NCBI RefSeq assembly: GCF_006345805.1
Contig: NW_021832597.1
Location: 1 to 64,000, forward strand
Direction: 5' to 3'
Origin: Octopus sinensis
Lineage: Eukaryota
Length of the DNA: 64,000 nucleotides
The notes under the pieces were generated by a model. It saw only the letters and a list, made by a program, of their open reading frames with translations, made no database searches and was not told where the DNA came from. The first letter of the stretch is position 1. The number at the start of each line of letters is the position of its first letter. A program made the position numbers and the translations under genes. Of this stretch, positions 8,863 through 57,345 are shown one piece after another.

Positions 8863-9649
8863 TATGCCATTATGATATTAATTTGTTTCTGATTTGCAAG
8901 TAAAAATCATGCTACAAAAATATGTTCTGATTATAAATAAATTGTTTTTTTTATCTCCTGTCAGTTTTTAATTAAAACACAGAGGTGTTGCAATAGTTTA
9001 TGTTTGTTCAAGATCATTCATTGTCAAGCGCCATAAATGAAACGCGTGCCTAAAGTGAAACGCTGTAACCTTGAATTTAACCTTCAATTGAGCTCTTGAC
9101 AATTATCAACTCAATATTAAAGATTTTTTCGCACTTTGAGATAATATTATTGGAATGAGATTTGCCAACATTGTAAAGGATGTTCAGGAGTATAAGAATA
9201 TTCTCGATGTTTTAATAAATAATACAGTTTTACGACAAATTGTTTATAGTGGAAATTTGTCCCACAGCCTTGTGACGAAAAGTGTACACATTAATTTTCT
9301 GATTTTCAGGAGTCTTTTGATTTGGTCTCTAAATCAATTGTGTACTATGAAGCATCAATTACAGCGAATGTTGAAATAAATCGTTACACGAAGCAATGAT
9401 ATAAATTTGTTTTAGAATTGTAGATCATGACGTAATCGTGAGACAAGCCTTACGACACACGTGAGAGTTAAAGTAGATAAGACTTTATTCAAAGTCAGGT
9501 CATGTCTAATAGTAGTTGTGTAATAATAAATGATTTAATTTGCAGAGTGGTAAACCCAAATTTGAAAATGAGAAAGTAGTGATGAATAGTAATGTTGATG
9601 TGTGGGTATAGTAGTGAAAGCTAAGCGATAAGTGTTAATGTTGAATTAG

Positions 9650-12600
9650 ATGAGTGTTGCGAAACGAATGAAGAGTGAAATAGACGAGGGACTGTATTCA
9701 CGGCAACTGTGTGAGGGATGATAGATATGTTAGATATGTATTGGGGCACCAAGCAATGAGGAGGATGAGTAGTGCGCGTGTGTTGATAAGTGGAATGGGA
9801 GGATTAGGGGTGGAGATAGCGAAGAATATAATCCTGGGGGGGATAGGTGTGGTGTGTGTGCAGGACACGAGGATGACAGGAATGGAGGACCTGTCGAGCC
9901 AAGTGAGAGTGAGTAGTGAATGAGTAGTTTTACGGGGGGAGTGTGGGGGAGAACAGAGCGAGTGCGTGTGTGGGACGGTTGAGAGAACTGAACGAGAACG
10001 TGGTGGTGGAGTGTAGGACGGGGGAGTTGACAATGGAAGTGTTGAGTGAGTATAGCATGGTGGTGGTGACGGACAACATCGAAATGAGTGGGGAGGCCGG
10101 GCGAATAAATGAGTGGTGTCGTGGGGCGAATATTCTCTTCATTTTGTGTAATTCGTTGGGCGTGTTTGGGTTGGTGAGTGGTGTGATTGGCAGACAAATA
10201 TTCTGCGACTTTGGGGAGGCCTTCACAGTGTATGACACGAACGGGATTGTTCCTCGCCCTTCTGTGGTGACGTGTATTGACCAAGTACTGTGCTCTGTGA
10301 GTGTAGAATGGAGTGGTGTTAGTCCACGACGACCACCCACTCGACATGGACGACGACAGTCTGGTCACGTTTTCCCAAGTGAAAGGAATGAGTGGAATAA
10401 ACGAGCATCCCCCCATGCCCATCCGACTCATCAGTAACCACCACTCATCATTCAGGCAGTTCGTCCTTCTCCATTGATGCCTCTTTCGGCAAGTACGAGG
10501 GAGGAGGAGTAGTCAGGGCTGTCAAAGTGCCCGTGGTCATGTCCTTCGTAGGCCTCCCCCTCATTGTAGAACTCCCTCCTCACTTCATTGGACGACTGTC
10601 CTTCCGAATATGCCTCCACTCATTCTGGCTTCCGCACTCTCGAATTATTCGTCCAGACTTATCACCGAATGCCCTCAGTCAGGGATGAGGTATTCCCCCT
10701 TTCTCCACCAGACTGATGCTCGTGCCTTCCAACACCTCGCCCAGTCCTCCTCCAACCAATTCTCTTATTACTGTGGAGCACGCCTCTGCCCCATGGACGC
10801 AGTCATTGGCAGTCTGTGTGCTCAGGAAGTCATCAAGGGATGCACCGGCAAGTTCACTCCCATCCACCAGTGGTTCTACTTCGACGCTCTCTCCTGTGTG
10901 TCCCACCACAAGGTCGACTACACCCCCGGCAATAGATATGCTGGCCAGTCCATCCTTTTTGGCGACCAAGTACAGAACAGACTCATGTCCCTCAACACTT
11001 TCATCGTCGGCATGGGCGCCATTGGCTGTGAACTCCTCAAAAACTTTGCAATGATGGGAGTCAGTTGTGGCTCCGGCACTACCTGGGTCACCGACATGGA
11101 CAGAATCGAGAGGTCCAACCTCAACAGACAATTTCTCTTCCGTTCCACCGATATGATGCGCCCTAAATCGACCACCGCAGCTCGAGCAATCAAGGAACTG
11201 AACAAGGACATGAACATCCAGGCATTGGAGTATCAAGTCGGCCATCCTACTGATTTCTATTTCAACGACCAGTTCTACGCTCGACTAGACTTGGTCCTCA
11301 CTGCCCTCGACAGACTTGACGCACGCAAGTTTGTCGATCTCAAATGCGTGTACTACCGACTCCCCATGATCGACTCGGGCACTCACGGAACAAGGGGGCA
11401 CTGCCAGCCTGTCATTCCCCACCTCACCGAGTCATACTCCTCCTCCAACGACCCCATCACTCGCGACTTTGCCTTCTGCACTGTCCGACACTTCCCCAAC
11501 TCTATTGAACATTGCATTCAGTTCGCCCTCGACTATTTCCGCGGGGTCTTCTACAACCAGATCGAGGCCGCCCACAAATATACTCTTTCTCCTCCACTCC
11601 TCTGTTCTCATCCACTTGTCCTCGCTCTCAAGGATGTCTACCCACTACACGCCTCCTTCGACTGGCCTTCCTGCGTCTCCTGGGCCTTCCGACAGTTCCA
11701 TGACCACTTTACCAACAATATTTCACAGTTACTCCACAACTTCCCCCCCGATCACGTATTCCCCACCCACACATCCACAGACCACCATCCACGGACTCCC
11801 CTTCTGGGCTCCCCCCAAACGATGTCCTTCCCCCATCACCTTCGATGTCGCCAATGTACTCTCCTTTCCTCATCCCAGCCTACTCACATACAGTATATCA
11901 CTCTCGCCGCACACCTCCGAGCACAGTCCTTGGGAATAGTCCCTCAGTCCACTCCCGTCCTCCACATACTCCACTCACTCACAGTCCCTGTCTTCACTCC
12001 CCAGGAGGGACTCGAGATTGGCGAGGATGACCAGCAGCCTGTTGACCCGGGGGGGATGAGTCGGGAGGACTTGGAAAAATGTTTGGTGGAGGACAAGAGC
12101 GGGGTCACTCTCACTCCTCTGCAGTACGACAAGGACGACGATGTGCATGCCCAGTTTTTGACGTGTGTGGCCAACCTGCGAGCACAGAACTACGGAATCG
12201 AACCGACGACGGTCTACAATGCTCGATTCGTGTCGGGGAAAATAGTCCCGGCAATGGCGACAACCACTTCTCTGGTGGTGGGATTGGTGTGCCTGGAGTT
12301 GTACAAGATTGTGCAGAACATGACTGACTTGGAGTCCTACTCGAGCACATTCGTGGACACGGCTGTCAACCAGTTGCTCAAGTGCACTCCAATCAAGTGT
12401 CCTGTCTCCAAGGTTGCCTTCTTTGTTCACTCTTAGTATGACCAGTTTGCCTGGACTTTGTGGGATCGCATTGAGATCACTCATAAAATGACTTTGTCCC
12501 AATTGTTCGAGTACTTGAGGGACGAGTATCGAGTCAACGTCGACGTGTTGTCTCAGGGAAATGCCACTTTGTATTCCTTCTTCATGAACAAGGACAAACA

Positions 12601-12785
12601 GCGCACTCGTCTGGCCATGGAGTAACACTTTCTTTCACGTTTGTAGAATCACCGATATTGTCAGGTCTGTTCTCGACGAGGGTATCCCCGAACATGTCCA
12701 ATTCATCGTCCTCGATGTCCTCTGTACTCCCCTTGACTCTTCTCAGGACATTGACTTTCCCTTCATTAAGTACAAGGTTCATTAA
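9650..12785 (+). CDS. UBA1: Ubiquitin-activating enzyme E1, multi-exon with 22-25 nt introns
   Basis: IDEGLYSRQL|YVLGHQAM, GMGGLGVEIAKNIILGG, VGMGAIGCELLKN, DMDRIERSNLNRQFLFR, catalytic CTVRHFPNSIEH, GKIVPAMATTT, and C-terminal UFD ending FPFIKYKVH*. Introns checked include 9709-9733 and 9903-9927. Confidence 0.95.
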
Positions 12786-13028
12786 CATTTCCTATCCCTA
12801 ATCAAGAGTTGTCTATTTTGGCTTTCTAATTACTTGTTCAATTAATTCCACCCTCCTGACCTTCCAAGTGAGTAGGGATGGCACCTCCTTCCCTGGCTTT
12901 GTAGAGGAAGTCAAGTCCATAATACATAGAATCATCTACAGTACCCCTACCAGTCCATCGATTAATATGACTTTACACTAGTTCAAGGAATAATCCGAAT
13001 AGAATGAATAAAATAAAAAGTGAATTAA

Positions 13029-13475
13029 CTAAGCCTTCTCCCCACGAATCCTCCTGGCGAGTTGAATGTCTGATACCATAATGGTCACTCGTTTCGCATG
13101 AATGGCACACATGTTTGTATCCTCGAACAAACTGACGAGATACGCCTCAGATGCCTCCTACCCAATTACTCCACCAGTCCAACCTGGAGTGCCCCAATGG
13201 CCGAGCTTTGGAATCTCAAATCAGTCTTGCAGTGTTGTGCTGTTTCCCTCACTAATCTTTGGAAGGGAAGCTTCCTTATCAGCAAATCCGTGCTTTTCTG
13301 GTATTTCTTTCATTTCTGGCATTTCTTTCATAGCCAGCGCTCCCGCCCGAAATCTTCGCGGGCGTTTGAGTCCTCCTGCCGCGGTAGCACTTTTACGGGC
13401 AGTTTTCACTGACAGCTGCTTTCTTGGCACCTTTGCTCCCGACGATTTGCGTGCTGTGTGCTTGGTTCGTGCCAT
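13029..13475 (-). CDS. H3.3: Divergent H3.3-like histone with one intron and an apparent frameshift (variant gene or pseudogene)
   Basis: [15 protein letters not shown]...[20 protein letters not shown]...[10 protein letters not shown]|EASEAYL...[10 protein letters not shown]. 26-nt intron 13158-13183 after Q93. No histone stem-loop seen downstream. Imperfect 18-nt duplication at about 13296-13331 with net +1 frame. Confidence 0.85.
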
Positions 13476-13617
13476 CAATCACCCTAAACATGTCAACAAG
13501 CATACACCACTAAAATTATCTAAGTGAATAAATCTAGGCAGAAAAAGTATCATTGAGGTGATCCAGTCGACAAAACTGTATATATTTTGAAATAATATAT
13601 ATTACCAGCTGGCTATT

Positions 13618-13662
13618 CCAATCGATTTCATTTGCCCTCCTCTGAGGCAAGTGTAAGCCAAT
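13618..13662. promoter_or_regulatory. Two CCAAT boxes 40 bp apart upstream of the H3 gene
   Basis: CCAAT at 13618-13622 and 13658-13662, 143-187 nt upstream of the ATG. Paired CCAAT boxes are common in histone promoters, but these could be chance. Confidence 0.3.
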
Positions 13663-14189
13663 CTTTTCACTGGCGGCGAATATCCTCATTAGTATGAACT
13701 ATATTTTGATTTTTTACGTTTTAAATATAGTATACATATTTATGTTTATATAAATATTTGTTTAGGGATGTTTGAGACCCAAATAGAGCATGCTTATTAA
13801 AGAAAGCGTACAGCTCATTAATTTCATCAATATTGAGTTATGTTGCAAATAGAAGAGGCCATTAGTGAGAATGCCTTTTTCTGTGCCCGAGGAAATTCAA
13901 TTACTATTTAACTGGACAGTTGTAGAATAAGGAGCACACGGTTTATGAAATTGTTTCTTTTTTTAATTCTCCAAAGCAGTCCACTCATAATAAAAAGTTG
14001 CCTCACTAAATGGACTTTTAGAGTTGAAATTGTGGAATGACTTGGTCATACCATATTACAAGTATAACAGAGGTTATCTTGTGTTCGATAGTAATACAAC
14101 GACTATCAAATCCATTTCCACTTACTTCAAACAAGACAGTGCTGATGCTGAGGAAATATCATTGACTAAGAAATAAGCAAACTAAAGAG

Positions 14190-17100
14190 TTGTTGATTGT
14201 TGCGAAAAGTGTAGGTAGATCATCTTGGGTCTTAAAGTTTAACGCGTATTTGTCAGTGAAACAAAATAAGTGCCGTAAAATCAGATATTTTTGTGTACGA
14301 GTGTCGACATTGAAGGGGGAATTGGCTTACAAATGTATTTCCATTGCAAATAAGTTGTCTTGCGCACCGGGTGGTAGTGCTGTGATGTATCACAGGATTG
14401 TCATATTTGTCACTTGAAATAACCAAATTCAAAAATATCAAATGGAACAATTCGGACATTGCTATTCGTCTCAGATGCTTCAAAATGGCATCCAAAGGAT
14501 CAGGTCTACAATATTGCAACTCGAAGTGGAATGCGTTCTACGGATTGCGCATTACCGGTGACAAAAATAGAGTGGAATACAAAATTGTGGGAGATTGGGT
14601 GGTGTATTTAGACCAATACAAGCGAAAAACAAAGTAGAAAGGAATATATTTCCATGACTCTTCACAACAACATCAATTTCACAGCCATCTTCAACCAACA
14701 GCAGACAAAATGCGCATACCACTCATTCTCGCTCAATTTGGTGGCTAATAATAAACGGTCGGCGATTGTCTTAAAGAGCAAATGGACATTAAAAGTGAAG
14801 ATGTGTCGAAAATGTAAGCCACTGATCCTGCATTGAGTAGTTCGAGTCGAGTTGTTGTTAACTCATTTTGAGGAGAATTTTGACCAAATGTGCATTTCCT
14901 ACGAAACCACGTTCTACCCATTGCAGAGCCAGTACATTCTCAGTGTTTGCGGATTGATTGTGGACAGCGACTACAACACACGTGACATTTAATGGGAAAT
15001 ACTTTCAGTCACCACGCTTGTTCTCGATCGAGTCAAAATGAAGAAAAGTCGTGGGAAAATGAAGTTAAAGCGGACCAAATGCCGGGGGAGATTTGACATT
15101 GAAAATGCATTCGTTGTCGTGTTCTATGCAATGGCAGAGGACGTCAAAGACCCCGAAAACTTGTATTACGCGTCGAATACTTATGTCCGCCTATTGCAAG
15201 TGAGGAAAAGCCGAGAACGCCGGCATACTATTTCACTGAGCAGTATTAACTAAACCTGTTAGCAGCAGTCATAATTAACGGGAATAATACTCTTAATATT
15301 GGCCACAATGAGTTGTCTCTCATCACCAAAACATTCCTTCCCATACCAATTGAGGTTTTTACCTCTCCGTTCACATTCAGTGCAGACTGACGCCCAACAA
15401 CAGACTCATTTATTCTGGCAGGATTGAGACCGGAGTTTTAGCGAACTTTGATTTAAACATGGCCGACCATCCGGACATTTGCGTTGATGACTTGGAGAAC
15501 CACATTGACTGTGATCTGGGGGTTCGGGGGAAAGTGGGCAAAGTCCTTGTCGTTAAAAATTCGGAAAATCCGACGTGTCCGCGTATTGTTCTACTAACAC
15601 GTCAGTGGGGGTGGATTTGAGGGTCGAGAAATTCCAATTCCGACCAAACAGGAGTGTTGTGAGGCCGGACGAGCCTTTCGGAATTATGGCAGAAATGAGC
15701 GCATTCTCGTTCGATTTCGTCCGTTTCCATAAATCCGCGTTCCGTCCAGTTCTCAGCGCACGTGCAGGGAACTACTCGGTGGTACTCGCCCAGTTGGGAG
15801 AGGAATGGAAGGACACATTGGTGATGTGTGCATGTCGAGCGTAGATGACGAGCAAATACTACCACTCCAAGCTAAACATAGAAGAATTCAAAATTGGACT
15901 AAACAAAGCAACATTCATTATTTGTGAACAGACGGTGACATTTGAACTGGCCATCTCTTTTCAAGAATACGCTCACTTTGATATTGACTTGGCAAATAAT
16001 CTTGCAAGTCTCTCCGCCTTCTTTGCGTGCCACGGTAGTCCCTCATACCATGACCCCAATAGTCGTTGACCCCTGCAAGGAAAACCTCCACAGCTGTCCA
16101 CGTGGGGCAAAGTGCGTTCGAGTCCACAAAACTTATTCTTCGCCCTACGGCGGGAAAGGTTACAAGTGCATTGTTAGTGCTGACGGAAAACAAAGTATAT
16201 TTTGAATCACCCATTTTGGCGTCAAATGTGCAAGTGGTGGTGCGAAAGAATGTCTGAAAATAGACGGAGCGTACTGCGAGGACACAGCCGGGTCGTTCGC
16301 TTGCAAGTGTGTGGACGGCTATGCACGAGTGACCAGACAAAACAAGACATTCTGTGAAGGTGATGATGAGAAATATTCCAGAAATAAACAAATGTAAGAA
16401 TGTTTGCGACGAGAATGCGAAATGCAGTAAAGTGATGGACTCGTATGTTTGTGAATGCAGTCATGGCTTCGAAGGGAATGGATTCGAGTGCACAAGTTCA
16501 TGCAATACTCATTTCTAGAAGTGAACGACTGCGAGTCCGTCAGTTGCAGTCACAACGGAGAGTGCGTCGAGTCGTCGGAGGGACACCAATGTCTTTGCAA
16601 TGCACAGTTCTATGGCCGAGACTGTGAATTGGGTGACTCGAGTCGATATTTCAGAATGGCCGATAATGAGTCCGTGGAGTAGTTGGAGTGAGTGCATCTC
16701 GGACTGTGGCGTGGGATACTCCCAGAGAACCAGGAAGTGCTTTATCGGCCACCAACAGATTGACTGCACACAACATGTTGGAGAAGGCACACTTTTCGAC
16801 TACAAAACGTGTCATTCCTCTCCCTGCTCAGCTGGTCACATGAGTTTTCATTTTCAGATTTCCACTTTTGTGACTCGGACCCTTGCGGAGTTGAGTTCGG
16901 GGGACTCTGCTCGACTACTGACAATGGTCGGGGGTTTATTTGCCATTGCCGCAAAGGCTACACAGAAATCAGAGACCCTCACAATACCTTCATTCGATGT
17001 CATGGTATTTTTCCGAGATAGTTCCAGACGTCAATGAGTGTTCCTCCGTTCCTCACGTGTGCTTTGGAGGAGCCCAGACGTGCGAAAACTCCATGGGAAG

Positions 17101-20100
17101 CTACTCCTGTTTCCCACGTGGGTGACGACTGTTCAATCGTAGGAAAAGCACCCAAAAAAGCCTCAGTGTTGCGAGAGACTGGCATTTGGAAGAAATATGT
17201 CAAATTCCCGTATAAAGTCAAATTGGAACAAAGTCCCATGATTAAAGGATTTGAAGTATTCTTTGGGCAAGTCACGTCGAGGTGTCCAGAAATGGGTTTG
17301 TTCTACTTCTCAAGTCCGAATGGCCTCTTTCGATGACCGAAGACTTGCATGAAGTACAAGACTTTGGGAAATTGGAAAAAGGACTCTCACTTATTGACGA
17401 CCTGGTGGGAATGGTGGCTGCTTCGTGGGCAAATTACGATTCCCAGAAAGGCCATGTGCTCGTGACTAATAATCTCTCACAGGTGGCAGTTTATTTTCCC
17501 ACCGACATTTCTGACAAACTTGGATTGGACTACGTCAACTTCTCAGCCAGAATTGTGTGGAAGGACATGTCCATCGCCAACATACATTATCCGGACAATC
17601 AAGTGGTCTCACTCGGTCTGAATAATAGAGGGAATCCTTCACCCTGACTATGGTGCTCAAGGATTACGATTTGTTCATTTTATACTCACTTGAGAAATAT
17701 GAGTGGTGCACCCACACTACGTAACTCTGTTGGGGGAGGTTGGCAGGGTGACTCCGCAGAATGGGGCGAAGATGGGACTGATTTATCGGACAGGCAATGC
17801 TTTCAAATGGGAGAACATGACCAATATTCCAACGAATATAAATGTCTCCCAAACAAGCAGCAATGAATGCGAAACGGTGGTCTCATTCACGGAGAATGAG
17901 GACATGGTCGACTGCAACCGGTGGATAAAAGTGATTGATGATTTTTCACGTTAGGAAAATAAAGTGAATGCCGAAGACTTGTCCTGTCCCTTCACGGAAG
18001 CACAAGTCATGGAATCCGAATTCAAATTGTTGTCAGCAGAGAACAAGAACATAAAGTGCTACGATGACGTGACAGTGGGTCTTTACATGAGTAAGTGAGT
18101 GGTTATTATGTCAGAAGAGAAAGTCACGTGCTGCTATGACCGGACTCACCACTCGCTTGTCGCACACGGCGAATATTCAGACGGATTCGACACTTTGGGC
18201 GTGATGGTAGACGATCAGTTTAAGTGTTAGAAATTGGACAAGGACAGGTCATTCTACGCCAAGTGCTGTGTCCATCCGAGTCTGTGCACACAATTTTTCA
18301 GTCTCAGGCCGTTCATTAAGTCAGTTCGGCGAGTGGGGCAGTTACACGGTAGGATTGACTATTCACCGACTTAGGATTTATTTATACGGATGGCACAGTT
18401 TATTCTTTGAGAAAAAACATTTCCAAGATGGTCGGACAATTCGTTGTTCTCGAAGGAGCACTGTCCCGCAATTTCCGTTTCCAAGTCAATTTTTCTTCAG
18501 AGTTGAGAACAGCAGTCCTCCGAATAGCAATCCACGACGACCAGACTCTATATTTATACGAAATACCTAATAACGGTTCCACTTCCCAATTAAACGGAAA
18601 ACACGTCTTCTCCCCTTTTTATGGAAAAGACAGGAAAACTGCTTACTTGGAGACTGGTTAACACTTTTGGACTCAATCATAGCCACGTCCGTCACAATTC
18701 TGATCGGACACCAAGTTTCCATCACTCTGTATGAGCTTGGCTGGGTCTTCACCATTAATGAGGATATACTCGATCTATTGGACGGAATTCTCGTGGAAGG
18801 GGACAATGAGTACAATCTTTGTCCCAAGAAAGACTATTCGGCCGAGTGTTTTCCCACACTTTCGTCCCTGAGGAGTCAGTTCGACGCCTTTCTACACAGA
18901 TTTGACAAGAAAGTGACCATTTCAAGTGCAATGTGAACTAATTTGGGTAGAAATGGAGAAAATATTGTTCTGCAACGCCACTCTGCGAGTTGTCCTCAAC
19001 GACTACGTCCACGTGGAGTGCCGAACCAAAGTGCGCGTGCCCCAAATCCACGTGTCCGTAATAGACGACATGACGGTTGTTAAAAACGTGACTCTGGAAA
19101 CAAAGCAAGTGGGAAGGGGCTACTCGGCAAACTTGTCGTTATTCTGGTGGAGTGCAAATCTGCGTTTGTTATTCCACGTGGAAAACAAACAAGTGCGTGA
19201 GGTGGAGGAACCGCGAGTATTACTGTGCGACTGTTTGAACGGGGGGTGGTGCGATTGGAGGGGAATGGAAAAAAAGTGTGTCTGCAGGGAGGGGTATTCG
19301 GGGGAGCGTTGCCAAGTGGTGTACAACTCGTGCCTGCTGTACCCGTGTTCTGAGGGTAGTGGTTAGTGAGTATTGAAGAATGTGTCAACTCGACAGACTG
19401 CGGGAATGAGGAGTCATGTTCGCGTGGGTATAAACTGGACGTCGACAAATGCATTGGTAATGGCATTTGGGCAACTTTCAGACATAAACGAATGTTTGAC
19501 AGATAACCCATGTCGGGCAAACAACACGGAATGCATAAATACTGAGGGGTCGTACAGATGCCAGTGCATGGGGGGATTTGTAGAGAGGAGTGTGAATGAG
19601 TGCGTGGGTGACTACCCCGATACATATATAGATGACAATGAATGTCTCAGGGACAACGGTGGATGCCAGCAGATCTGTGTTAACACACACGGAGGCTACA
19701 CTTGCAAATGTAGAGAGGGATTCTCGCTGGTCCAACCGTCGTCGTGCCATGGTAGGAGGACAGAGTGAGTGCTAGACGTGGACGAGTGCCTGGATGGCAG
19801 CAAGTGTTCACAAAAGTGCATCAATCTCCCCGGGGCGTACACGTGTGGTTGCAGTGAAGGACATGGACTGTTGAGTGATGGGCAGACTTGTGGGAGTATA
19901 ATTGTCTTGACAGTGCGAGGAATGAACCAATGCAGGGATAAGCAATGTGATGCCCGGAATGGTTATTGCTACGTTATGGGAGTCGAGACGTGTGCTTGCA
20001 AGGAAGGATATTATCTGGATGGGGACACGTGCATAGGTCATACTCCCCAACATGTTCAGACGTCGACGAGTGCAACACACGTCTTCACAATTGCTCAAAT

Positions 20101-44216: not shown

Positions 44217-44379
44217 AACAGGAAGCAAGTCCTAAACTCGTGCTATTATATTAATTGGGGAGGTTGCCCATTTAATAATGATAATATTGAATTAATTGTG
44301 ACATTTATATTTAGCCAACAATTAGGAAGTGAGCTACTCAATTGGAAAGTGGAGAATAGTAAAATAGAGAGGAAAGTAT

Positions 44380-45112: not shown

Positions 45113-45339
45113 TCATGTAGTATCCTACTGGTTTATTCTCTTTCTAAGCTTTGTCTCACCTGACTTTTTAAATCTCATACTTTTAAACACTCATAAGTTA
45201 TGAAACATTCTAAATGGCAATTCTAATTTATGTACAGAAACTATGGATCTCGGTTGGGAAAACTACTGTCTTGGTCGTTCTTTATAGACTATCTCCTACC
45301 GTTGACACTGTTCGCAGAGGAAGTTTATTCAGCTGTTAG

Positions 45340-45730: not shown

Positions 45731-46970
45731 TTAAATGTCCAAATTGTCAAGCCTGTAGAGTCTAGCAGTGCCATGTGCATCAGCGAGAGCGAGTAATGGA
45801 GAGATGGGAGAGAAGGCGAGAGTGTTGACGAGTCCGTAGTAGGGTAAATGTTGATAGACAGTGCGAGAGGAAGTATTAATCTAAATGAGTATGAATGTAA
45901 ACCAGTCTGAGTGAATTGTGTGATGAGAGTATGGCGAGGAGTGAGTGAGTGGGGTGGAAAGTGGTGAGTGTGGGGGAGGTGAGCAAGTGAGTGAACTTGG
46001 CAGAGGGGATGGATGGGAGTGAGTAATGCAATCAGTGGTGTTGTGACGACTCCACTCGCACAGCTGGGAGTGTAAAGAAAGAATACCCGGAGGCAATATA
46101 TACACAGCGAGACATGTGCCCCTGACACACCCCACATCGACGAACAACAGGCGTGCATTCGAGTGTCCCACACCCAGACAACCCCATCGTCTGCCACCTC
46201 ACTACCCCCATTCATCAATATTTGATTGTTTCCGTAAAAGTGGCTGGCCTACACTCTCCACATACACACTACTGGGGGGCACTATCTTCGCCTTTTCTGT
46301 CTCCAAGTCCTAGTGAAGGAACGACGTCGACTTGCCTGTCCTCACCACACACCCACTCAGTGTTCCCTCTAAGCGAGTGGTAGCTATGCGCGCTGGGCAC
46401 ATTGCATTGTGCAGCGTTATAAAGTGACGTGTGCAAAAAATTTTAATTTTATACTTTCTACTGCGCAAAAAAAAAATTCGCTGCGCAGCAAGGTGCAAAC
46501 TGCTGCGCGGCCGCGCACGCGCGCAGCTTAGAGGGAACACTGCACCCACTCCCCACGAATTTGGCCATTTTTAGGGCAAAGTGGTCGAAATGGAGTGGCA
46601 CGTCTCCTCATATCCCACGAATTGCAGTGATTTGTGTCCCACCAGGATTAGTCGACTTTGAATTGTAATGAGTGGATTGGGGACTAATCACTCTCCTTCC
46701 TACATTCAAGTTGGTCACCACGTCCTCCCATCGGTGGTACTCCACCTCCTCCGACCACACTTCACACGACTGTCCACCCATCCTCTCTGCCCACTCACCC
46801 TTCCCCTTCACAAACCTGTCTACTCACCACCACACTTACTCCTTCCGCAGGTATTCACTACTCACTGAGTCCTCCATGTCCGTCCACGCTGCCTTTCTCT
46901 TCCCACGCTCACCACCCCTCTTAACACTTTCCTTCCTTCCAAACAGCAGAGATTCCGTTGAGTTGGACAT
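45731..46970 (-). pseudogene. UTP18: UTP18 (WD40 SSU-processome protein), disrupted by an exonic MITE, an in-frame TAG and frameshifts
   Basis: TESLLFG, AAWTDMED, GVVWVWD, FVDVGCVRGTCLAV, YIASG|CASGVV, TFHPTHSLLAI...LRL|INTSSRTVYQHLP...LAFSP...LALADAHGTARLYRL. Confidence 0.8.
46358..46542. mobile_element. hAT MITE (185 bp) inside a UTP18 exon
   Basis: TIR cagtgttccctctaag / cttagagggaacactg with 8-bp TSD cacccact. Confidence 0.95.
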
Positions 46971-46974
46971 AACC

Positions 46975-48165
46975 TTGTCTCCCACTGAGGTAATTGGATA
47001 TCCATTGTTTTGAGTTATTTGTGTTGATGATTTTCGATTGTTTGAGTCAACAATTCTGTTTATTGTTTTGAAGAGTGTTTTTGTTTTGTAGTTGAGTGTA
47101 TTGGCGAACTGACGCCACTTTTCTTTTTCCTTTCCTTGATTTGCTAGATATCTTCTTTAGTTCCCTTATTCAGGTAACAATATTCGTGGTTCCTGACCGA
47201 GACGTATTGTGTTTGAGGTTGTCACGAGTTTTCATTAAATCTGCTATTTCCTTCGTGTAGTTCGGGTTGTATTTCCTTATGTTCCGCATGGGGATGTGTC
47301 TTTTCGCTGCTTTCGAGATAATATCGGTGAAAAGCTTGTTGGATTTATGTATATTTGACAGGCGTTTGTCCCCGGTAATTTCCAAGAAAAGTTTTTCGGT
47401 TTCGTTTTTATAGAGGCTCCATTTGGCTCTTTTGTAGTTTATGAACGTGTTATTGTTCGGAATGTTGATTAGGACATGAGTTTGTATTGGTGTATGATAG
47501 TTGATTGATTGTATTCCATGTGGTATTAGGTTTGGAGAGCAGAGAAAGATATCCGAAGAGGTGGTGTTGTTATTTTCTTGGGGTTGTTGAGGATGAATAG
47601 ATTGTTTAATTGTTAACATATTAGGTTGCCGCGAAAGCTGTTAGGGTTTGATTTGTACCAAGATGTGTTGTGTGCATTCTAGTCCCTGACGAGAAGGAAA
47701 TTATTCATGTCGTGAAAGTTTCAAGATGAGGATTGTATGAGCATGGAATAGTAGTTGAGATTGGGGGATGTAGATGTTGATTATACTGAGATCGGATTTC
47801 ATGTTATTTTTTATTTGGATGGATTTTAGCTCGGTTTTTTTATCGACTTTATGTTTGAAATCGTTTGATGTTTCGATATATGAGATATTTTTACTGATGA
47901 ACGTAATCAGGCCCCCACCGGACGAGGGTCTGTCAAGTCGTGTAGTCGAATAATCTGGAATTTTTGGTGTTTAATTTGCTTTGTTGTATTAAGGCAATAT
48001 CGATGTTGTTTGAGATAATAAAGTGTTTGAGCTCCATGAATTTGTTTTGGATTCCGTTAATGTTCAATCGGAGAATATTTATCTTATTCCGACGCTTTGG
48101 ACTGTTAATGGTGTGATCCTTTTGGATCTGACGGCTTTTAGCCTTGGCCGCCTGGGAGTGTCACC
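46975..48165 (-). mobile_element. 5' part of a Jockey/I-like LINE (leader, APE endonuclease, linker), 3'-truncated at the UTP18 start
   Basis: INILRLNINGIQNK...NIDIALIQ, SSDIFLCS, FINYKRAKWSLY, KWRQFANTL...NGYPITSVGDK. Confidence 0.8.
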
Positions 48166-48191
48166 CGGGGGACTATTATTATTTTAGCACA

Positions 48192-48356
48192 TGTGCATTC
48201 AAGTCCCTGACGAGAAGGAGATTATTCATGTCGTAAAAAGTTTCAAGATGAGGATTGTACGAGCATGGAATAGTAGTTGAGGTTGGGGGATGTAGATGTT
48301 GATTATACTGAGATCGGATTTCATGTTATTTTTTATTTGGATGGATTTTAGCTCGG
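48192..48356. repeat. About 165-bp near-identical direct duplicate of 47671-47834
   Basis: tgtgcattc...gtccctgacgagaagga...ggattttagctcgg in both copies. Confidence 0.9.
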
Positions 48357-48399: not shown

Positions 48400-50175
48400 G
48401 ACCTTCTGTACCAACGATTTCCAGCTTCCGCGGTTTTGGGTCAGTATCGGAAGTTCGTCGAGAGCATCACAAGTCTTCAGGGTTTTCTTTAAAAGCCTCA
48501 AGTCGTCTTGCAGAACAAACGGTAGGGTATTCTTCCATGGTCACGTAGGGAGGTGAAGTTGGAGTCATCCTCAAGATGTGTCCAAATAGCCTCCAGCGAC
48601 CATTGACGATGTCCCGGCTAATTGGCCCCGAGTTGCTGATCTTGTAAATAGTCGAGTTGCTCGCACAGCTGGGAGTGTAAGTGTAGGCAGTTCAGGGAAC
48701 GAAGCTGATTTCTGTGGAAAGAGTCGAGGTTCTTTAAATCTGAATCAGAAATGCCCCATGTCGAGGAGTTGTAGAGTAGTGCAGGTTTGACACAACCGTT
48801 GTAGACTTTGGAGCGTAGTGATGGGCCCATCTGGCAGTGTCGTAACCAATTCTTCATGACAGTTTTTAGAGCAACAGCAGCCAGTGTTTTTCTACGCATT
48901 ATGTCCTCCCGGTCACCAAGCAGTGAGCCAAGCTTCTTGGATAGTCTCCATGTTTCCATAAGTTGAGTGTCTGAGCGTGATATCTCAACCACTTCCGTCT
49001 TGTCCGGGTTCATTTTTAGAAACCATTCCCCGAGTTTTCCTGATGCAATCTCCAGCAGTCTAGCCAGTGCTGATCTGTCGCTCGACACCAAGTCGACATC
49101 ATCCGCGTAGATAATTTCGGTGATTGACTCCCCGTATAGGCTTCTCAGCTCTCGTAGGGCAGCTTCGAAGTAAATCACGAAGAGCAGTGGTGAAAGGGAG
49201 TCACCCTGAGGAGTTTCCACATTTGTTAAGAAGGGTCTGGACAAAGTCCTCCCAAGGCGGACAATAAGTTCCGTGTTTGTCAGTAGTACCTGGATCATTC
49301 TGTTTTCATTCTCTTCTAAGAAGCTCCGCAGGATCTCGGTGAATGCTGTCGAAAGCTCTCGACATATCGATCCCCAGAATGATTGCGGTACTTTTGAATC
49401 TTTGGTGGGTTGCACATCGCCATCGGTAGCCCCACAGAACGTCTATCCTTCTCTGAATCCGCTGTGGTTTGACAGAACGATTAATGAGAGAATCTTCCTC
49501 AGGGAGTTCAGCAGGATAACCAGGCGGAGGTTTTTTACTGGACAAGTTAGTTTATTAGATTTTTGAATAGGCATTAGAATCCCGGATCCGAGTGGGAGTA
49601 AGTCGTTTTCAGTGAACATATCATTCAGAATGTTCGCTATATTGCTTAAGAGAGACTCGGGTCCGTGTTGTGTTGAATCCTTGTTCAAAGAAATCCGCTA
49701 TAAGGCTTACGCTCCGTGTCCTGTTCCACCGGGTCAGATACTTCAGTTCCTTTGTTGGTTAGGAGTCGAAGTTTGGGGCTGCATTTCTTCCAATTGAGTA
49801 ACCGTAATGCTTGAAACATTGTCCTTGAGAGATTCCAGCTCTTTAAGTCGGGAGGTCGGAATATCCCGACCGTATTGGAGATTCAGTCGCTTTATTTGTT
49901 TCTGAATAATTGCTCGTCGGGCTTTCAGTGCATGTTTGGTATCCGAATCCGTAGTGTTCTCAATCGTCAACTTGACCTCCTTTTGTTCAGCCGATAGGGC
50001 GAAAACATCCGGATAGTCTGGTAGTGTTCTTTGTATGTTTTCCAACACATTTATCTGCGATGGATGCCACTAGACATAGCTTTCCAAGGGGCAGTCGGCA
50101 TTAGTCCATCTTCATATTTTGGAGTGATCCTTTTGGATCTGCCGGGTTTTAGCCTTGGGCGCCTGTGAGTGTCTT
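48400..50175 (-). mobile_element. Degenerate RTE-clade LINE with internal deletions (no APE)
   Basis: LRLVILLNSLRK, IDMSRAFDSI, TPQGDSLSPLLF, IIYADD, RWRLFGHILRM. Related to the RTE at 35885-38690. Confidence 0.85.
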
Positions 50176-50257
50176 GTAAAGACAATAGTTATGTAATAGA
50201 GGGTGGAGATGAATATTGAGTGTATAATAAAAATAGTAATAGTAGCGTGGTGAGGTG

Positions 50258-51284
50258 ATGGGGCACAAGAAGGGAAATAGTGAGGAAATGCGGGCAGTGT
50301 CGGCGATAGAGAAGGCGTTGGGGGGGAAGAAGGAGAGAGTGGGGGAGGAGGTGGAGAGTAGTCTGTTGGGGGTGTTTGGGGAGAGAAATGGCAAGTATTG
50401 GCGGAAGCTTCGTTCGATAGTGTTCAACCTGCGGGAGAATGAGGGAGGTGGTGTGTGTGAGGCCTAGAAGTTGTGTGAGGGAGTGAGGAGTGGGGAAATA
50501 ACTCCAGACGGATTGGTGCAAATGACGACGGCGGAAATGGCGAGGAAGGAATTGGCGGAGTGGAGACACTCTCAGAACATGGTTGTCCTCTCCTTCCATT
50601 GGTAGAACATGGCACATATCAAGTCCATCCCCCACTCCACTCACATTCTCAAAATGACACACAAGGGGGAGGTGCCCGTGGGGGAAGAGGACATGAAGGT
50701 GTTCAACCTCCCTGAGGAGATGCCGGTGAGGGGTGTCAGTCCATCCCCCCTCCCCCCGTCCCCCGTCCACTCCACTGGGGATTTGAGGGAATTGGAGAGA
50801 CTGAGGCGGGAGACTGAACTGATCATCCACTCGTCTGATCACCACTCGTGGGAGGGCACAGTCCGAATGGACACACTCGTCTTCCCTGCTGTCCTCGACA
50901 TGCACTTTCCCCACAATCCCCTCCTCTCTGAACTCCTCCCTCCCTCTTTGCACATCTGTGGACGGGTCAAGTCTGCCCACGCATTCCACTATTTGCACAC
51001 CTGTCTCCATTCTTCCACCAAGGTCACTCCTCCCCTTATTCCAGAACCTCCTCGTCTTCACACTCTCCAGCACACACCATCACTCTGACCTATTGAGGCA
51101 TTATCTCCTCTCCAGGGACCGTCTCGGGGTCGTCGACAACTCCACCTGTCCATTGGCCGACACTTACCTCTCCCCCTTCCCATTCCCCCCCGCCACTCAA
51201 CTCCTTCAACACACTCCATGCTCACTCACACACCTCGATGCCCCTTTCATTCTCCTCGCTTTGGTCCGCCCTGCTGACATTTAG
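50258..51284 (+). CDS. PHF3/DIDO1/SPOCD1-like protein (TFIIS-M plus SPOC), possibly 5'-truncated by the RTE
   Basis: KYWRKLRSIVFNL...LVQMTTAEMARKELAEWR, THKGEV, SPOC-like SWEGTVRM...LPPSLHICGRV, LLALVR. Confidence 0.75.
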
Positions 51285-51431
51285 ACTATCAATTATTGCC
51301 AATCCATTTTCATTGATTATCAATACATTTCTAGTTATATAAATTTGTTTTTATTGTTCATATTCTGGCTGGCCTAACTACCAAACAAACAATACATTTC
51401 GCCGACCTCACCACATTATTTGTTGAGTAAA

Positions 51432-52075
51432 ATGGAAGCCGGCTCACCTAAACCAAACAAAAAGAACGACAATACATTCATTAGTTCCCCCCTCCTTCCT
51501 GGAAAGCCCAGACATTTCTTTGGTTTTGTTCATTTCAATCAGGCCAGTCAACAAATATGAGTCTGACTCATTCGAACTGGACACCTGGTCGGAGATTGGC
51601 CGTCGGAGGAACAACAGTGTCAGTTCGACTGGGGACTTTGTCGGGTCACCGGATCTGACCAAGAAGTCGCAGATTTGGGTGGGAAATACATCCGAGAGGC
51701 AGTCGAAAGAGCACTTCGACATGGAGGATGTGGTTATTCTCATTTGATGATGCTCAGGTGGTGAGGGGTGGGCACACCTGGTCGTACTTCGACGAGGAGG
51801 GGAACACCCAAGGCCCCTTCTCCCCCGCGGACATGTCGATGTGGTATCGAAGGAACCTGCTTTATCCCCAACTGATGATAAAGAGGGCAGATATGAATCA
51901 CCACATTCTACTCGGTCAGTTTGGTGTGTCATGTGCAGGGGACTTGGTCAAACTTAGGAATGGAAGAAATCCATTCGAGGACGAGGAGGCGTGTTTCCCC
52001 AACGGAGTCACTAAGTCCCCCTACAAATCACACTATTTTTCTGAATGTCGCAGTTTCCCGCACAGAAGGCATTGA
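51432..52075 (+). CDS. GYF-domain protein (GIGYF-like fragment or minimal form)
   Basis: WSYFDEEGNTQGPFSPADMSMWYRRNLLYPQLMIKR...L|GDLVKLRNGRNPF, with short introns. Confidence 0.75.
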
Positions 52076-54259: not shown

Positions 54260-56010
54260 AACCTGTAATTTGAAGAGATGAAGACCACTTTAAGATGTTT
54301 GGATCCGACGGAAGGCAATATGGACAACCAGGTTTATTGAAAAAACTTTGTTTATTTCAAAGATGAGTAAGTTAACCAAAACAGCATCAACTCTCCCTAT
54401 CACCTGGTCGAAAATGTTACATAGAGGAGATGGCTGGAATAGTGAAGGCGATAGAAGAAAGAATATTGTCAGTGTCAACGCAAGAGAAACTGTGCTTGTT
54501 GTACTTGATGGACTCGGTGACAAAGAGCACGGAGAATGGGATATATGACTTATGCAAGAAGCACGCTGTAGTGGTGTGGGGATTGTTGGGAGGACTGGAT
54601 TTAGGGTGTGGAGACCGAAGTAGTAGTCAAGAGGCCCAGTTATCAATGGATGTGACGTACAGATTGAGTGTACAAGTCGATGTTGTGTGTGCAATGAGGG
54701 GCTGGAGGCACTGTGTTGTGAGGAGGACGAGGGCTGGGTCCTCAAGAATGCCATTGGTAGTTTTCTTTGTTCGGATGTTCCTAGAACTACCACCATGTTA
54801 GCGGGATAGGTTATTTGATTATTTTTGTTTAACTTTTCACTTGGGACAATCCTGATTAAATGTGTGGCTATAGTAGTGTAGATGAGTTAAATAAATAACT
54901 AAAATGGCGTGTCTTGCTATTTAAGTCGGAGAAAGGTAATTTGAATATAACTTGCGATAGTTTGCTTCATCTATAAGGAAGTAGTATGTCTTACTTTATT
55001 TATTTATTAACCCCCAAGTTTTTGATTCGTATCTAAAATTTGTATTTGATGCAATTGCGGATGAGACCCATTTTGTTGAAAATTAGTAAATTTTATTAAA
55101 CTTAAATAAAAATCCGTTTAATTTGTACATATATCGATTTGCTCATGTATACACGGAACTTGTTGTCCGGTAACTTGGTCAATTTTGTAAAACTGGCGGA
55201 CTATGGTGAAAGAAGTTTTATTTGACCCACAAAAACCTTGGGTGTGATGAGACCTTCTAGCAGGCCTTACCATCTTTCAGATTATTTCTATACAACATGG
55301 TTGTGACTCAGCAAATGTAATTGTAAAGTAAAAATCGTTATAATTAGTAAAATATTTGTTGATCTATTTAAATGTATAATCGTGAATTAAACACTAGTTT
55401 TAATAAGTCTGGTGTGAGATGACATTCGAATTTGTGCCTACGGAGATTGACCGACTACTGGAGGACGAGCAAGTAATTGTATGAGGAGAATGTGTGTTTG
55501 GACGACCTGTTGGAGCAGCCTGACATAATCGAGGAATGCAGGGAATGCGAAGCTGGTGTGCTAGTGTAGTGAGAATGCAGAAGACGGTCAATATTGGAGG
55601 AACTAAGGACGTTGGGAGTGCCGGAGAGTGGTGATTTCAGGTGAGTGTGATGGGGAGGAGAGGGAGCATGTGTTGGCCAGTGAGGAGTGTGTGCTGTATA
55701 CTCCTACATCGAAGGGGAGACAGTGCACCCAGTGACGATGAGCTTAGTGCTGAAAATATTTATTGCCAGTGTGGGTGGTGTGATGCCTTAATGAATGTGG
55801 TGTCGGGGGAGTCTGATTAGCATATATGAACATGCACGGGAGTGTTTATTTCGGACATTTACAACTGCCCTCTGATGTGTTTGTAATGGACTGATTGACA
55901 GGGACGTGCAGTGGGAGGAGGACTGTCCATTCGGGGATGTGTGGAGTGCCTACGATTACAACGACTTTACGCCCACTCCTTTGTCCAGACAGCCCACCAC
56001 TTGGTCTTTG
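54260..56010 (+). pseudogene. PCF11: PCF11-like gene (CID plus zinc-finger remnants), frameshifted and interrupted
   Basis: CID motif EKLCLLYLMDSVTK. Later decayed (DW)HNR...RSW and VHSGC motifs, split by AT-rich DNA at about 54810-55380. Confidence 0.5.
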
Positions 56011-56559
56011 AAGGATTAGATTATTTAAAGAATATGTTTTATTTGTTTGGCTAGTACAACTAGCGAGGGAGTTTCCTCAGGGTATTGTGTATAGGGATGA
56101 GTGTGCCTGCCCCTATCGATAACCATCCAGCATTGGTGAACACGCGAGGAAAGATATTTGTATGTTACGAATCCTTGCTCTTCCAACAATCCTCAAGATC
56201 CTTCTCAGTTTTTCCCGATGTTGGACTTTGGACCCAACGCAGATACGGGACAGGCGGGGAGCAGCCTTCTCTAAATGGGCAGTAAAACACATGAGGGTGT
56301 CAAAAGTGACCCCCAGTTCTTATGTAATAACATAGTGGTTGCTGTTTCCAGGTTGATTTGAGAGATGTTTATCCGTATGGTTTGCTTATGTTTTAGATAT
56401 ATTGAGATACGTCATCATTTCAACCAAAGTGTCGACAAAGGTACATTTTATCGTTTCAATGTGTTAATGGGTATCTTACCTTCGAATACTCTTGCGGAAC
56501 TTAAGTTATACCAAGATTAAATTATCCGCTTAGACTCATCTATTAGTCAATGCGGTACT

Positions 56560-57010
56560 TGAGGTTGAAATTCACAAAAATTAAATTTTCGATGTGAATA
56601 CTTCTCTATTAAAAAAGGCATTGGTACTCTCCAACATCGAAGTTCATCGGGAAAAAATAGCAAAAAACTATCCAAAAATAAAAGAATAGAATAGTTTTTT
56701 TTATTAAGACACTTTAGTTAGTATTATGTCTATGATAGATCTGTAGCCTGGCGGATTGAATAGTTTTTATCAAGAAAAACCAAAATTAAGAAAACAAGGA
56801 AAGGTCATTAACAGGAAGAGAAAAACAAGTCACCGAAGTGTTCTTTCCAAGCTAACCCCAATTATAATTAATCGACATATCTTTTCTCCAGAACCATCCG
56901 GATCGGTGGCACATAAAATTCATGTGAGTTTTTTAGCCCTTTGTCAAGTTGTACTCCATGAGCCAGTTTCAATGCGATACGTCTTGTCTTTTCCACAGGA
57001 GGGACTTGAC
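56560..57010 (+). mobile_element. Possible Merlin/ISXO2-like remnant
   Basis: KLTPIIINRHIFS resembles TLLPIIxxHIxPG. Heavily decayed, no TIR found. Confidence 0.3.
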
Positions 57011-57029
57011 TCAGTTCTGCGACGAAGTG

Positions 57030-57345
57030 ATCATTCGACCACTACACTGACACCTGCGGGGGCGACACCATAAGGGTACCACTCTTCCACAGCCGAGGTC
57101 GCCTTGATCAGTCACGTCGACAAGAACGACACACTAATATCGATAATCCCCTCTGTTAAGTTTTTCCTTTCGTTTTCTGTCACTCTTCTCCCGTGCTTTT
57201 CCTCTCGCCCACAGGATAACCATTTCCATGTCAAACTCCAGTCACTCGGTAGTTCTTTTTCTCATTCCAGCTGTCGAGTATGACTTCCCCACCGACGACC
57301 CCGCCTACAAGAGTGTCCTCAAGTTCTTCCTCGCCCTAAGGTCAA
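57030..57345 (+). other. C-rich exon-like fragments of an unidentified gene
   Basis: Short open segments bounded by gt/ag (e.g. gtagttctttttctcattccag|VEYDFPTDDPAYKSVLKFFLALR|gt). Confidence 0.35.

Follow-up and report, generated by a model that had tools for sequence, protein, structure and literature searches.

The first 64 kb of the unplaced 107.6-kb contig NW_021832597.1 of the Octopus sinensis assembly GCF_006345805.1 (2.72 Gb in 13,516 contigs), here called the window, contain genes whose two strands differ drastically in base composition. Unconstrained sites in the GC-rich, broadly expressed genes are all driven toward G on one strand. The strand that gains G is the one whose 5' end lies at whichever end of the transcription unit is closer, and each unit is consequently G-rich first and C-rich afterwards, no matter which strand is read. 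Overall, freely evolving sites are about 70% G early in a gene and about 60% C late in it. When GC skew, (G-C)/(G+C), was profiled in 200-bp steps along the window, absolute values of at least 0.4 were reached in 34 of the 319 steps, as opposed to 0.24 under binomial expectation and to 10 of 299 in control samples (six of 10 kb each) taken from chromosome-scale contigs of the same assembly. The most extreme values were +0.80, +0.78 and +0.73 (steps starting at 50201, 33201 and 45801) on the positive side and -0.67 and -0.57 (at 40601 and 11801) on the negative side.

The skew blocks are confirmed as real. An earlier sequence-only reading of the window had listed a series of them by eye, and all were recovered by the 200-bp profile and by segmentation with a three-state hidden Markov model (HMM), at most about 100 nt from where they had been placed. 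As a whole, the interpretation put forward in that reading is partly supported. Its statement that each GC-richer gene island is skewed holds for the blocks that it named and fails for the EGF-like, GYF, CK1, histone H3-like and ICMT genes, which show little or no skew; for ICMT, whose third codon positions are AT-rich, it had itself noted the lack of skew. A period of about 2 to 2.5 kb did not materialize: periodogram peaks at 2.4 to 2.7 kb do not rise above a null of shuffled chunks, and autocorrelation has no peak at 2 to 2.5 kb. Unit sizes range from about 0.6 to 2.5 kb and track transcription units. The sequence analyzed that clearly belongs to the genome of the contig amounts to about 100 kb, made up of 84 kb of this contig and parts of three others; the 20 kb beyond the window add three more G-then-C units, among them a lamin-like gene.

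Genes and skew blocks along the window

Gene strands were set by Pfam matches and orthologue alignments. A splice-aware, periodicity-based gene finder returned the strands and most exons and missed tiny introns that lie in frame, so that introns were assigned manually by comparison with orthologues. UBA1 is the hand-curated gene model and the others are approximate; the names UTP18, FCHSD and PHF3 derive from the sequence-only reading together with weak or absent Pfam matches. The features are as follows.

9461-10330, plus strand: UBA1, 5' leader resembling an untranslated region (UTR) and first exons, G block; skew +0.63; 4-fold degenerate sites G 0.78, C 0.09; ATG at 9650
10400-12002, plus strand: UBA1, middle part, C block; 4-fold C 0.54-0.62, G 0.04-0.06; five G-poor introns
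12003-12400, plus strand: UBA1, second G block; 4-fold G 0.46, C 0.20
31230-31860, minus strand: RPS9, weak unit, G-rich 5' and C-rich 3' in sense; Pfam Ribosomal_S4; 5' 4-fold G 0.52, C 0.16
33205-34230, plus strand: FCHSD-like gene, 5' part, G block; skew +0.54; third-position skew +0.38 and +0.17
34233-35460, plus strand: C block covering the 3' half of the FCHSD-like gene, an intervening spacer (about 150 nt) and the 5' part of IPK; SH3 and IPK Pfam matches
35540-35870, plus strand: IPK, 3' part, G block; skew +0.28; C-terminal IPK sequence (HIIDFSYA...) extends as far as about 35900
35880-38650, plus strand: nested insertion of retrotransposons lacking long terminal repeats (non-LTR), unskewed, between the convergent IPK and V-ATPase genes
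38769-39700, minus strand: V-ATPase A, 3' half, plus-strand G (sense C); Pfam ATP-synt_ab and ATP-synt_VA_C; 4-fold C 0.63-0.64
39700-40160, minus strand: V-ATPase A, middle, GC-rich unskewed mixing zone; 4-fold C 0.35, G 0.30; third-position G and C both 0.2-0.45
40162-40802, minus strand: V-ATPase A, 5' part, plus-strand C (sense G); skew -0.58; sense 4-fold G 0.69, C 0.00
44344-45192, plus strand: gene44, a small gene; G to 44798 and C from 44799; 4-fold G 0.54, then C 0.63
45785-46985, minus strand: UTP18-like WD-repeat gene; plus-strand G at 45785-46100 (sense 3', C-rich) and C at 46110-46985 (sense 5', G-rich)
50165-51499, plus strand: SPOC-domain (PHF3-like) gene; G, mixed zone, C; weak SPOC match
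54406-55948, plus strand: region of a CID-domain gene; two G blocks (54406-54738 and 55460-55948); weak CID match

The HMM placed the blocks, on the plus strand, as follows: in UBA1, G at 9461-10190, C at 10553-12002 and G from 12004; in the FCHSD-like gene and IPK, G at 33205-33790 and C at 34233-35351; in V-ATPase A, G at 38769-38976 and C at 40162-40802; in gene44, G at 44344-44798 and C at 44799-45192; in the UTP18-like gene, G at 45785-46045 and C at 46684-46985; and in the SPOC gene, G at 50165-50565 and C at 50872-51499.

UBA1 gave the most detailed picture. Removal of ten introns opens a frame of 913 codons. Seven introns lie in its first 1.06 kb, and a stretch of 1,044 nt without introns follows in the C block; the first G block has four C-poor introns of 22-25 nt. 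The C block ends at 12003 in a C-to-G switch that is less than 20 nt wide (d = +0.88) and falls within the coding sequence VPVFTPQ|EGLE; since VPVFTPQ aligns with LPVFTPK of orthologues, this switch does not lie in an intron. In the C block shared by the FCHSD-like gene and IPK, third-position skew is -0.67 and -0.47 in the former and -0.39 in the latter. Third-position C climbs to 0.5-0.64 in the 3' half of V-ATPase A, and the 5' part of this gene ends in an abrupt switch at 40802/40803 (d = +1.19). Open reading frames (ORFs) of the UTP18-like gene, for which the Pfam search gave no match, lie on the minus strand, and its sense third-position skew runs from +0.50 through -0.25 to -0.83 in the 5' to 3' direction. 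The 4-fold sites of the SPOC gene are, in order, G at 0.81, C at 0.47 with G at 0.23, and C at 0.71. A weak C stretch occurs near 57000-57345 in the region of the CID-domain gene.

The switch in gene44, at 44791 (d = -0.98), lies a few nucleotides from the 3' end of a 23-nt intron. Splice sites were considered as the general location of switches and rejected, because the switch at 12003 is in conserved coding sequence and the one at 10330-10400 is within an exon; the position of the gene44 switch at an intron end is taken to be a coincidence.

Several further observations concern the surroundings of the units. At 13029-13478 (minus strand) lies a divergent H3-like histone gene whose introns are tiny and whose 5' exon, unlike the neighbouring genes, has A-rich third positions (A 0.42). 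Beside the 5' end of the UTP18-like gene, a 1.3-kb stretch rich in G and T (47000-48350) reaches a GC skew of +0.59 and an AT skew of -0.45, and a 200-nt patch rich in C and T (42602-42797, skew -0.65) is located within an AT-rich spacer. The UTP18-like gene is interrupted at 46360-46545 by an insert of about 186 bp that resembles a miniature inverted-repeat transposable element (MITE); its terminal inverted repeats are GTGTTCCCTCTAAGC and GCTTAGAGGGAACAC, its core is A/T-rich, and the insert is unskewed.

Sites that carry the skew

Skew is greatest at 4-fold sites, in the introns of 22-25 nt and in the UTR-like flanks. At 4-fold sites, 5' parts of genes have G at 0.54-0.81 and C at 0-0.27, and 3' parts have C at 0.54-0.71 and G at 0.01-0.11. 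GC at these sites is about 0.75-0.9 in skewed genes, compared with 0.25-0.55 in other genes and in transposons, and spacers have a GC content of 25-35%. Each of the eleven curated introns (22-25 nt) matches the skew of its block, with G 0.43 and C 0.05 in G blocks and C 0.47 and G 0.04 in C blocks, while T (about 0.31) and A (about 0.2) are the same in both. Leaders 5' of the ATGs (about 100-190 nt) and trailers 3' of the stop codons are skewed like their genes, and synonymous families are swapped by block, with TTG versus CTC for leucine and AGT versus TCC for serine. Skew is missing from genes with AT-rich third positions (ICMT), from balanced ones (EGF-like, GYF, CK1) and from the ORFs of transposons.

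The bias is strong enough to replace amino acids. Displacement was measured column by column against 40 UBA1 orthologues: at codon positions 1 and 2, G minus C is +0.37 in the first UBA1 block, compared with +0.20 in the orthologues, and -0.24 in the second C block, compared with -0.07. Glycine and valine each make up 12% of residues in the UBA1 G block, and proline 10%, histidine 8% and glycine 3% in the C block; the general direction is toward Gly, Val and Glu in G blocks and toward Pro, His and Ser in C blocks. A shift in amino-acid use had been claimed from the sequence and is borne out by this comparison. So is the view that the skew is not imposed by the proteins, as it is present in both introns and 4-fold sites.

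An artefact of assembly, sequencing or annotation is hardly credible as the source of the pattern. The contig is indeed an unplaced scaffold of a long-read assembly. Yet open frames continue past the switches with their homology to UBA1, V-ATPase A and RPS9 intact, the window is free of N, so that block boundaries do not coincide with assembly joins, and the blocks are shared by three contigs at 92-99% identity. In the UBA1 region, the blocks recur on the partial copies in contigs C12468 (97-99% identity) and C8694 (92-96%). Given the skew at 4-fold sites and in introns and the same blocks in three contigs, the pattern is neither protein-driven nor artefactual.

In comparison with spacers, which are AT-rich, both A and T drop, as does the minor one of the two bases G and C, and the other one dominates. 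The A/T ratio does not mirror the flip between G and C; introns have more T than A in both types of blocks, and over all sites, with blocks oriented so that they are G-rich, A is at 0.273 and T at 0.227, so that G is weakly paired with A. Because A and T fall together, the signature is not that of a process confined to transitions, such as deamination. Cytosine deamination by APOBEC or AID enzymes was rejected: T falls rather than rises, and the residual base lacks a TC or WRC preference, the observed/expected ratios for the 5' neighbour of residual C being 1.05 for T, 1.18 for A, 0.76 for G and 1.29 for C. A signature of CpG methylation was likewise rejected (CpG observed/expected 0.82).

On either strand of skewed blocks, several frames contain no stop codon, and an antisense ORF of 260 amino acids at 9733-10512 (minus strand) is one example. 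Another ORF, of 652 amino acids (10478-12433, plus strand), runs straight across a 25-nt and a 23-nt intron. The 24-nt intron at 10170-10193 in the UBA1 region is in frame, and its retention would add eight residues (LVSGVIGR) and leave the frame unbroken. As blocks are open in many frames, ORF-based annotation is unreliable here.

Provenance of the contig and its repeats

The sequence-only reading had spoken of an animal genome. The contig is most likely DNA of a dicyemid, a renal parasite, within the Octopus sinensis assembly, and hence stems from a parasite's genome rather than from that of the species for which the assembly is named. This assignment is drawn from several sequence traits. 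The nearest UBA1 protein is 97% identical, is labelled Octopus sinensis and is encoded on another small contig, and the other listed matches reach at most 44%; among the 120 UBA1 protein matches listed, no mollusc is prominent and neither a myxozoan nor a dicyemid appears. A look-up of the annotated protein by exact match returned no record. Matches to the ThiF family fall into long open frames on small contigs and short exons on chromosome-scale contigs, and the latter, host exons have AT-rich third positions, the opposite of those in the skewed genes of the window. Among 51 metazoan genomes, introns of less than 30 bp occur only in myxobolids and Dicyema japonicum, and the median intron of Dicyema sp. 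measures 27 bp. The eleven curated introns of 22-25 nt agree with the dicyemid trait of introns mostly below 30 nt. Association with a cephalopod host, the second trait, is seen in a contig set that separates from the host genome by transposon confinement, frame length and third-position GC. D. japonicum has been sequenced from O. sinensis specimens (GC 36.7%, repeats 49%).

The octopus assembly holds many contigs of this second compact animal genome (C9068, C12468, C8694, C9300 and the roughly 40 listed contigs that carry its transposon family), and public databases label at least one protein of the second genome (P0001) as coming from Octopus sinensis. The UBA1 region (window positions 9000-19703) exists in three versions across contigs. 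C12468 matches the window from 9885 onward, and its breakpoint adjoins sequence resembling window positions 32657-32712. C8694 carries positions 9000-11705 with a 417-bp deletion and has a truncated UBA1 copy. At 17 sites this copy has T where the intact copies have C, and the reverse was never seen, though these sites are few and unpolarised; the comparison suggests that high GC is not the equilibrium of a dead copy. In all, the three copies differ at 54 positions, few of which are polarisable and which are too few for substitution spectra.

The retrotransposon insertion at 35880-38650 is a 1-kb element inside a 1.7-kb one, as other copies join query position 777 directly to 1781. Its dozens of listed relatives, all on small contigs and none on contigs C1-C30, are mostly 92-98% identical, with a few fragments at 80-86%. 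Most listed relatives being diverged by 2-8%, the insertion is young. It splits a G block and is itself unskewed, and the earlier conclusion that the pattern predates it is upheld. No second copy of either the nested element or the MITE-like insert was present in the 264 kb examined. A tandem satellite with a repeat of about 94 bp (62561-63917) combines a G skew near +0.4 with a GC content of just 31% and occurs also on C12468 (25001-26360), with 86-94% identity between the contigs.

Polarity, unit edges and possible mechanisms

Third-position skew shows that sense-strand polarity is G (5') to C (3') in 10 of the 11 skewed genes, namely UBA1, RPS9, V-ATPase A, gene44, the FCHSD-like, UTP18-like, SPOC and lamin-like genes and two further genes of the contig. 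They include genes on the plus strand (UBA1, FCHSD-like, SPOC, gene44, lamin-like) and on the minus strand (V-ATPase A, RPS9, UTP18-like). The sole exception is IPK, a plus-strand gene that spans a C-to-G switch near 35500 and runs from C to G. The pattern had originally been described as independent of gene orientation, which is uninformative: the reverse complement of a G-to-C switch is again a G-to-C switch and independence of orientation follows automatically, while the sense-strand view reveals the common polarity. That there is not simply one cycle per gene, also part of the original description, is borne out by the C-to-G switch at 12003 in UBA1 and by the order of blocks in IPK.

A single polarity in all but one of the genes could speak for selection on nucleic-acid function, acting either for 5' ends prone to R-loops together with 3' ends that resist hybrids or for a GC-rich mRNA that is free of structure or paired end to end. 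A stretch free of C or free of G cannot form G-C pairs, and the predicted gene44 transcript does fold as a single 5'-3' panhandle with its G-rich 5' half on its C-rich 3' half. This fold is no more stable than those of shuffled sequences (z = -0.93), the polarity of IPK is inverse, and selection would have to operate at every 4-fold and intron site in a parasite with small populations and override amino-acid conservation. We consider such selection improbable.

UTR-like edges mark both ends of the bias, which is absent from the flanks, from young insertions of transposons and from genes whose third positions are AT-rich. When 12 unit edges were read inward, mean skew was +0.44 in the 350 nt inside and -0.02 in the 350 nt outside (p = 0.64 versus zero), and both GC content and skew end at the edges without a taper. 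A common motif was not visible in 18 aligned edges, and telomere-like repeats were not seen in the unit-edge sequences examined.

These one-sided edges bear directly on replication. In bacterial chromosomes with their origin and terminus and in human N-domains, the strand in leading orientation is G-rich. The contig resembles such replication skew in its abrupt C-to-G jumps, in declines that are sometimes nearly linear and in its sign convention; it differs in scale (1-2 kb versus 0.1-1 Mb), in its confinement to genes and in the lack of mirrored skew across isolated edges. In addition, an excess of G over C should go along with an excess of T over A, and A is the wrong partner. Replication or amplification origins at C-to-G switches, one of the mechanisms that the sequence-only reading had offered, predict a mirrored C block beyond the unit edge and are not supported, the outer flanks being neutral. 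In a modified form, origins would sit at both ends of an active gene, forks would meet inside and the lagging-strand template would be damaged, with transcription supplying the damage, so that only gene bodies would be marked. Converging forks of this kind would give the usual sign and equal amplitude on both sides, would cross zero within the unit and could produce the near-linear gradients of some genes. We nevertheless regard them as unlikely, because forks leave an origin in both directions and the outer flanks of the edges have no mirrored skew, intergenic DNA is unskewed, replicons of 0.6-2.5 kb with switches of less than 20 nt are implausible for metazoan initiation, and G co-varies with A and not with T.

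Neutral flanks would be explained if each unit were a gene-sized DNA molecule that is excised or amplified and replicated or processed from its ends, much like ciliate nanochromosomes, and dicyemids have been reported to eliminate chromatin, to form circular DNA and to amplify DNA selectively. The polarity, too, corresponds to the purine skew of gene-sized macronuclear chromosomes of ciliates, including Sterkiella, in which both strands are purine-rich at their 5' ends (Ricard et al. 2008, PMC2633312). In ciliates, however, the skew occupies about 70-130 nt of non-coding subtelomeric DNA of telomere-capped somatic molecules and does not enter the coding region (PMC2633312), whereas the units described here are chromosomal, embedded in a 107.6-kb contig with no telomere-like repeats in the edge sequences examined, and their skew is strongest at synonymous sites. 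Published circular contigs of Dicyema sp. carry only mitochondrial protein domains, which leaves the excised units proposed in the earlier reading without support. Somatic molecules are moreover not inherited, so that no mutational skew can enter the germ line through them, and this possibility is very improbable.

Further constraints come from the interior of the units. Skew crosses zero at 35-75% of unit length. Transitions are gradual in the lamin-like gene (+0.53, +0.23, -0.25, -0.45), in the SPOC gene and in V-ATPase A with its GC-rich unskewed middle, and abrupt at 44791; middle zones are GC-rich with roughly equal G and C. In V-ATPase A and in the SPOC, UTP18-like and lamin-like genes skew peaks at the outer edges, and in UBA1 and gene44 it is flat.

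A double-strand break at the G-to-C switch, also proposed in the sequence-only reading, predicts a central maximum and does not agree with the four genes in which skew peaks at the edges and crosses zero gradually. Kataegis-type mutation clusters at resected breaks do share C-depleted and G-depleted sides with the contig, and the sign is the one that 3' overhangs should leave at a G-to-C switch. They differ from it in that the contig lacks a TC or WRC context, has an equilibrium composition rather than a cluster and is often skewed most strongly far from the switch. A broader version would place break hotspots in or near genes active in the germ line and combine GC-biased conversion with unequal handling of G/T and A/C mismatches on the invading strand, from which the strand skew would arise. 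In species without PRDM9, recombination hotspots lie at promoters, which would account for a gene-specific effect, and signatures of biased gene conversion near transcription start sites in dog and stickleback count in favour of this explanation. So do 4-fold sites of 75-90% GC amid spacers of 25-35% and the occurrence of T in the truncated UBA1 copy of C8694 at 17 sites with C in the intact copies, with no reverse case; high GC at neutral sites of an AT-rich genome and decay of a dead copy toward AT are what GC-biased gene conversion would produce (discussed in PMC2927911). As described, though, GC-biased conversion is strand-symmetric and does not predict that G or C sites are nearly all G in one half of a gene and C in the other. 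Breaks in the centre should yield a peak at the switch that fades outward, and several units show the opposite; breaks at the edges should yield mirrored flanks, and there are none; GC and skew stop at UTR-like edges instead of tapering. Dicyemid reproduction is largely asexual or by selfing, which also tells against recombination, and we judge its role as the cause of the skew to be doubtful.

The two halves of a unit could finally have different origins, with R-loop-type damage to the non-template strand in the 5' part and, in the 3' part, conversion by minus-strand cDNA that is primed at the mRNA 3' end and bears the same type of lesions on the other strand. The C phase does grow toward the 3' end and halts at the transcript end, the genome is rich in young retrotransposons that encode reverse transcriptase, and the 1,044-nt intron-free stretch in the C block of UBA1 follows seven introns in the first 1.06 kb. 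Spliced cDNA would delete introns, however, and those of C blocks are kept and C-rich; IPK and the second G block of UBA1 would also be left without explanation. We hold this combination to be quite unlikely.

Any model needs two opposed influences that proceed inward from the ends of the unit, act only inside it and write G on the strand that runs 5' to 3' away from the nearer end. One conceivable, if rather speculative, answer is that dicyemid germ-line DNA metabolism works each active gene from both ends, be it by origins at the ends, gene-sized replicons or repair templated by cDNA or RNA. If this were true, a new gene-scale regime would write the G-to-C gradient, drive protein composition and feed the extreme evolutionary rates of dicyemids.

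We tentatively favour, at less than even confidence, a pressure that is coupled to transcription and would change whatever base is present to G on the strand that is displaced. Sense transcription would be responsible for the 5' part and antisense transcription for the 3' part, and R-loops may add to the effect. Our preference stems from the fact that transcription is by nature one-sided and specific to genes and that a transcription-dependent pathway writing G into the non-transcribed strand is documented; the steps themselves we infer. The pressure would be strand-asymmetric and would work through mutation or repair. The displaced non-template strand, as the single-stranded side of a transcription bubble or R-loop, would lose bases, and the gaps may be bypassed by insertion of C opposite them, following a Rev1-type "C rule", which would create G from A, T and C alike. 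Sense transcription would affect the 5' part, and antisense transcription would affect the other strand in the 3' part, where it might start at the 3' end of the gene, read through from a convergent neighbour or arise from cryptic intragenic starts. A G-rich RNA would form a more stable hybrid, and the process could thereby feed on itself, reach saturation and make its borders sharper. Such feedback would give equal amplitude on both sides and, occasionally, extra or inverted blocks such as the second cycle of UBA1 and IPK.

A precedent exists in yeast, where transcription-dependent T>G, A>C and C>G mutations arise from abasic sites, left by excision of uracil or cytosine, that are bypassed by Rev1 and Pol zeta with insertion of C (Owiti et al. 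2018, PMC6063437), and where loss of RNase H raises these mutations only on the non-transcribed strand (PMC6063437), the displaced strand being affected more when R-loops persist. The low levels of A, T and the minor base of the G/C pair at 4-fold sites fit Rev1-type bypass of abasic sites, although composition alone cannot show a pathway. R-loops are predicted from sequence at 6 sites, as opposed to 0.08 after randomisation of G and C, on the sense strand in 5' parts and on the antisense strand in 3' parts; the prediction on these strands is a consequence of the block composition itself.

Several points weigh against a transcriptional origin. Antisense transcription of every 3' half is assumed, and equal amplitude on both sides demands either equal antisense activity or the proposed saturation. 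The switches at 12003 and 44791 are narrower than 20 nt, which is hard to achieve by overlapping transcripts unless the feedback is assumed. Biased gene conversion, too, would be expected to raise GC to very high levels at the neutral sites of a genome that is AT-rich. In known skews linked to transcription, G is accompanied by T and the sign stays constant along the gene, whereas G pairs weakly with A here and the sign reverses.

The nearest parallels in other systems show the same mixture of agreement and difference. Transcription-associated mutational asymmetry (Polak et al. 2010, PMC2927911) and the yeast pathway (PMC6063437) are confined to transcribed DNA and target the non-transcribed strand, as would apply to the contig, and the Rev1/Pol zeta pathway of yeast likewise writes G from T and C (T>G, C>G). 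These asymmetries keep one sign along a gene, are compositionally weak and in mammals raise G together with T (PMC2927911); in the contig, the sign flips inside the unit, the levels of both A and T are sharply reduced, and G is weakly associated with A. The GC skew at human promoters and terminators, where R-loops form (2013, PMC3787257), resembles the contig in that G exceeds C on the non-template strand past the start of broadly expressed genes, in that skew delimits transcription units and in its R-loop-forming sequences, which are predicted ones in the case of the contig. Skew at human 3' ends is co-oriented with that at 5' ends (PMC3787257), while 3' parts in the dicyemid-like contig are reversed, that is, C-rich in sense. 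Amplitude in the contig is also far larger than in human genes (4-fold G up to 0.81), whole coding regions are covered, and proteins are altered.

The sequence-only reading knew of no description of such a pattern in an animal genome, and none was found in the literature searched on dicyemids and GC skew or base composition, in which most subscription journals lie outside coverage and an earlier description is possible; two dicyemid genome papers and a 2026 paper on introns make no mention of skew. One practical consequence is that the public octopus reference assembly contains dozens of parasite contigs. If the pattern is general in dicyemids, it would be the strongest nuclear strand asymmetry in an animal known to us and would offer a natural system in which a strand-specific process of mutation or repair has run to saturation, such that one could directly test what transcription, R-loops, translesion synthesis, replication direction and biased conversion each contribute. 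Compositional heterogeneity and long branches have troubled the phylogenetic placement of dicyemids, and the skew is probably an unrecognized source of both.

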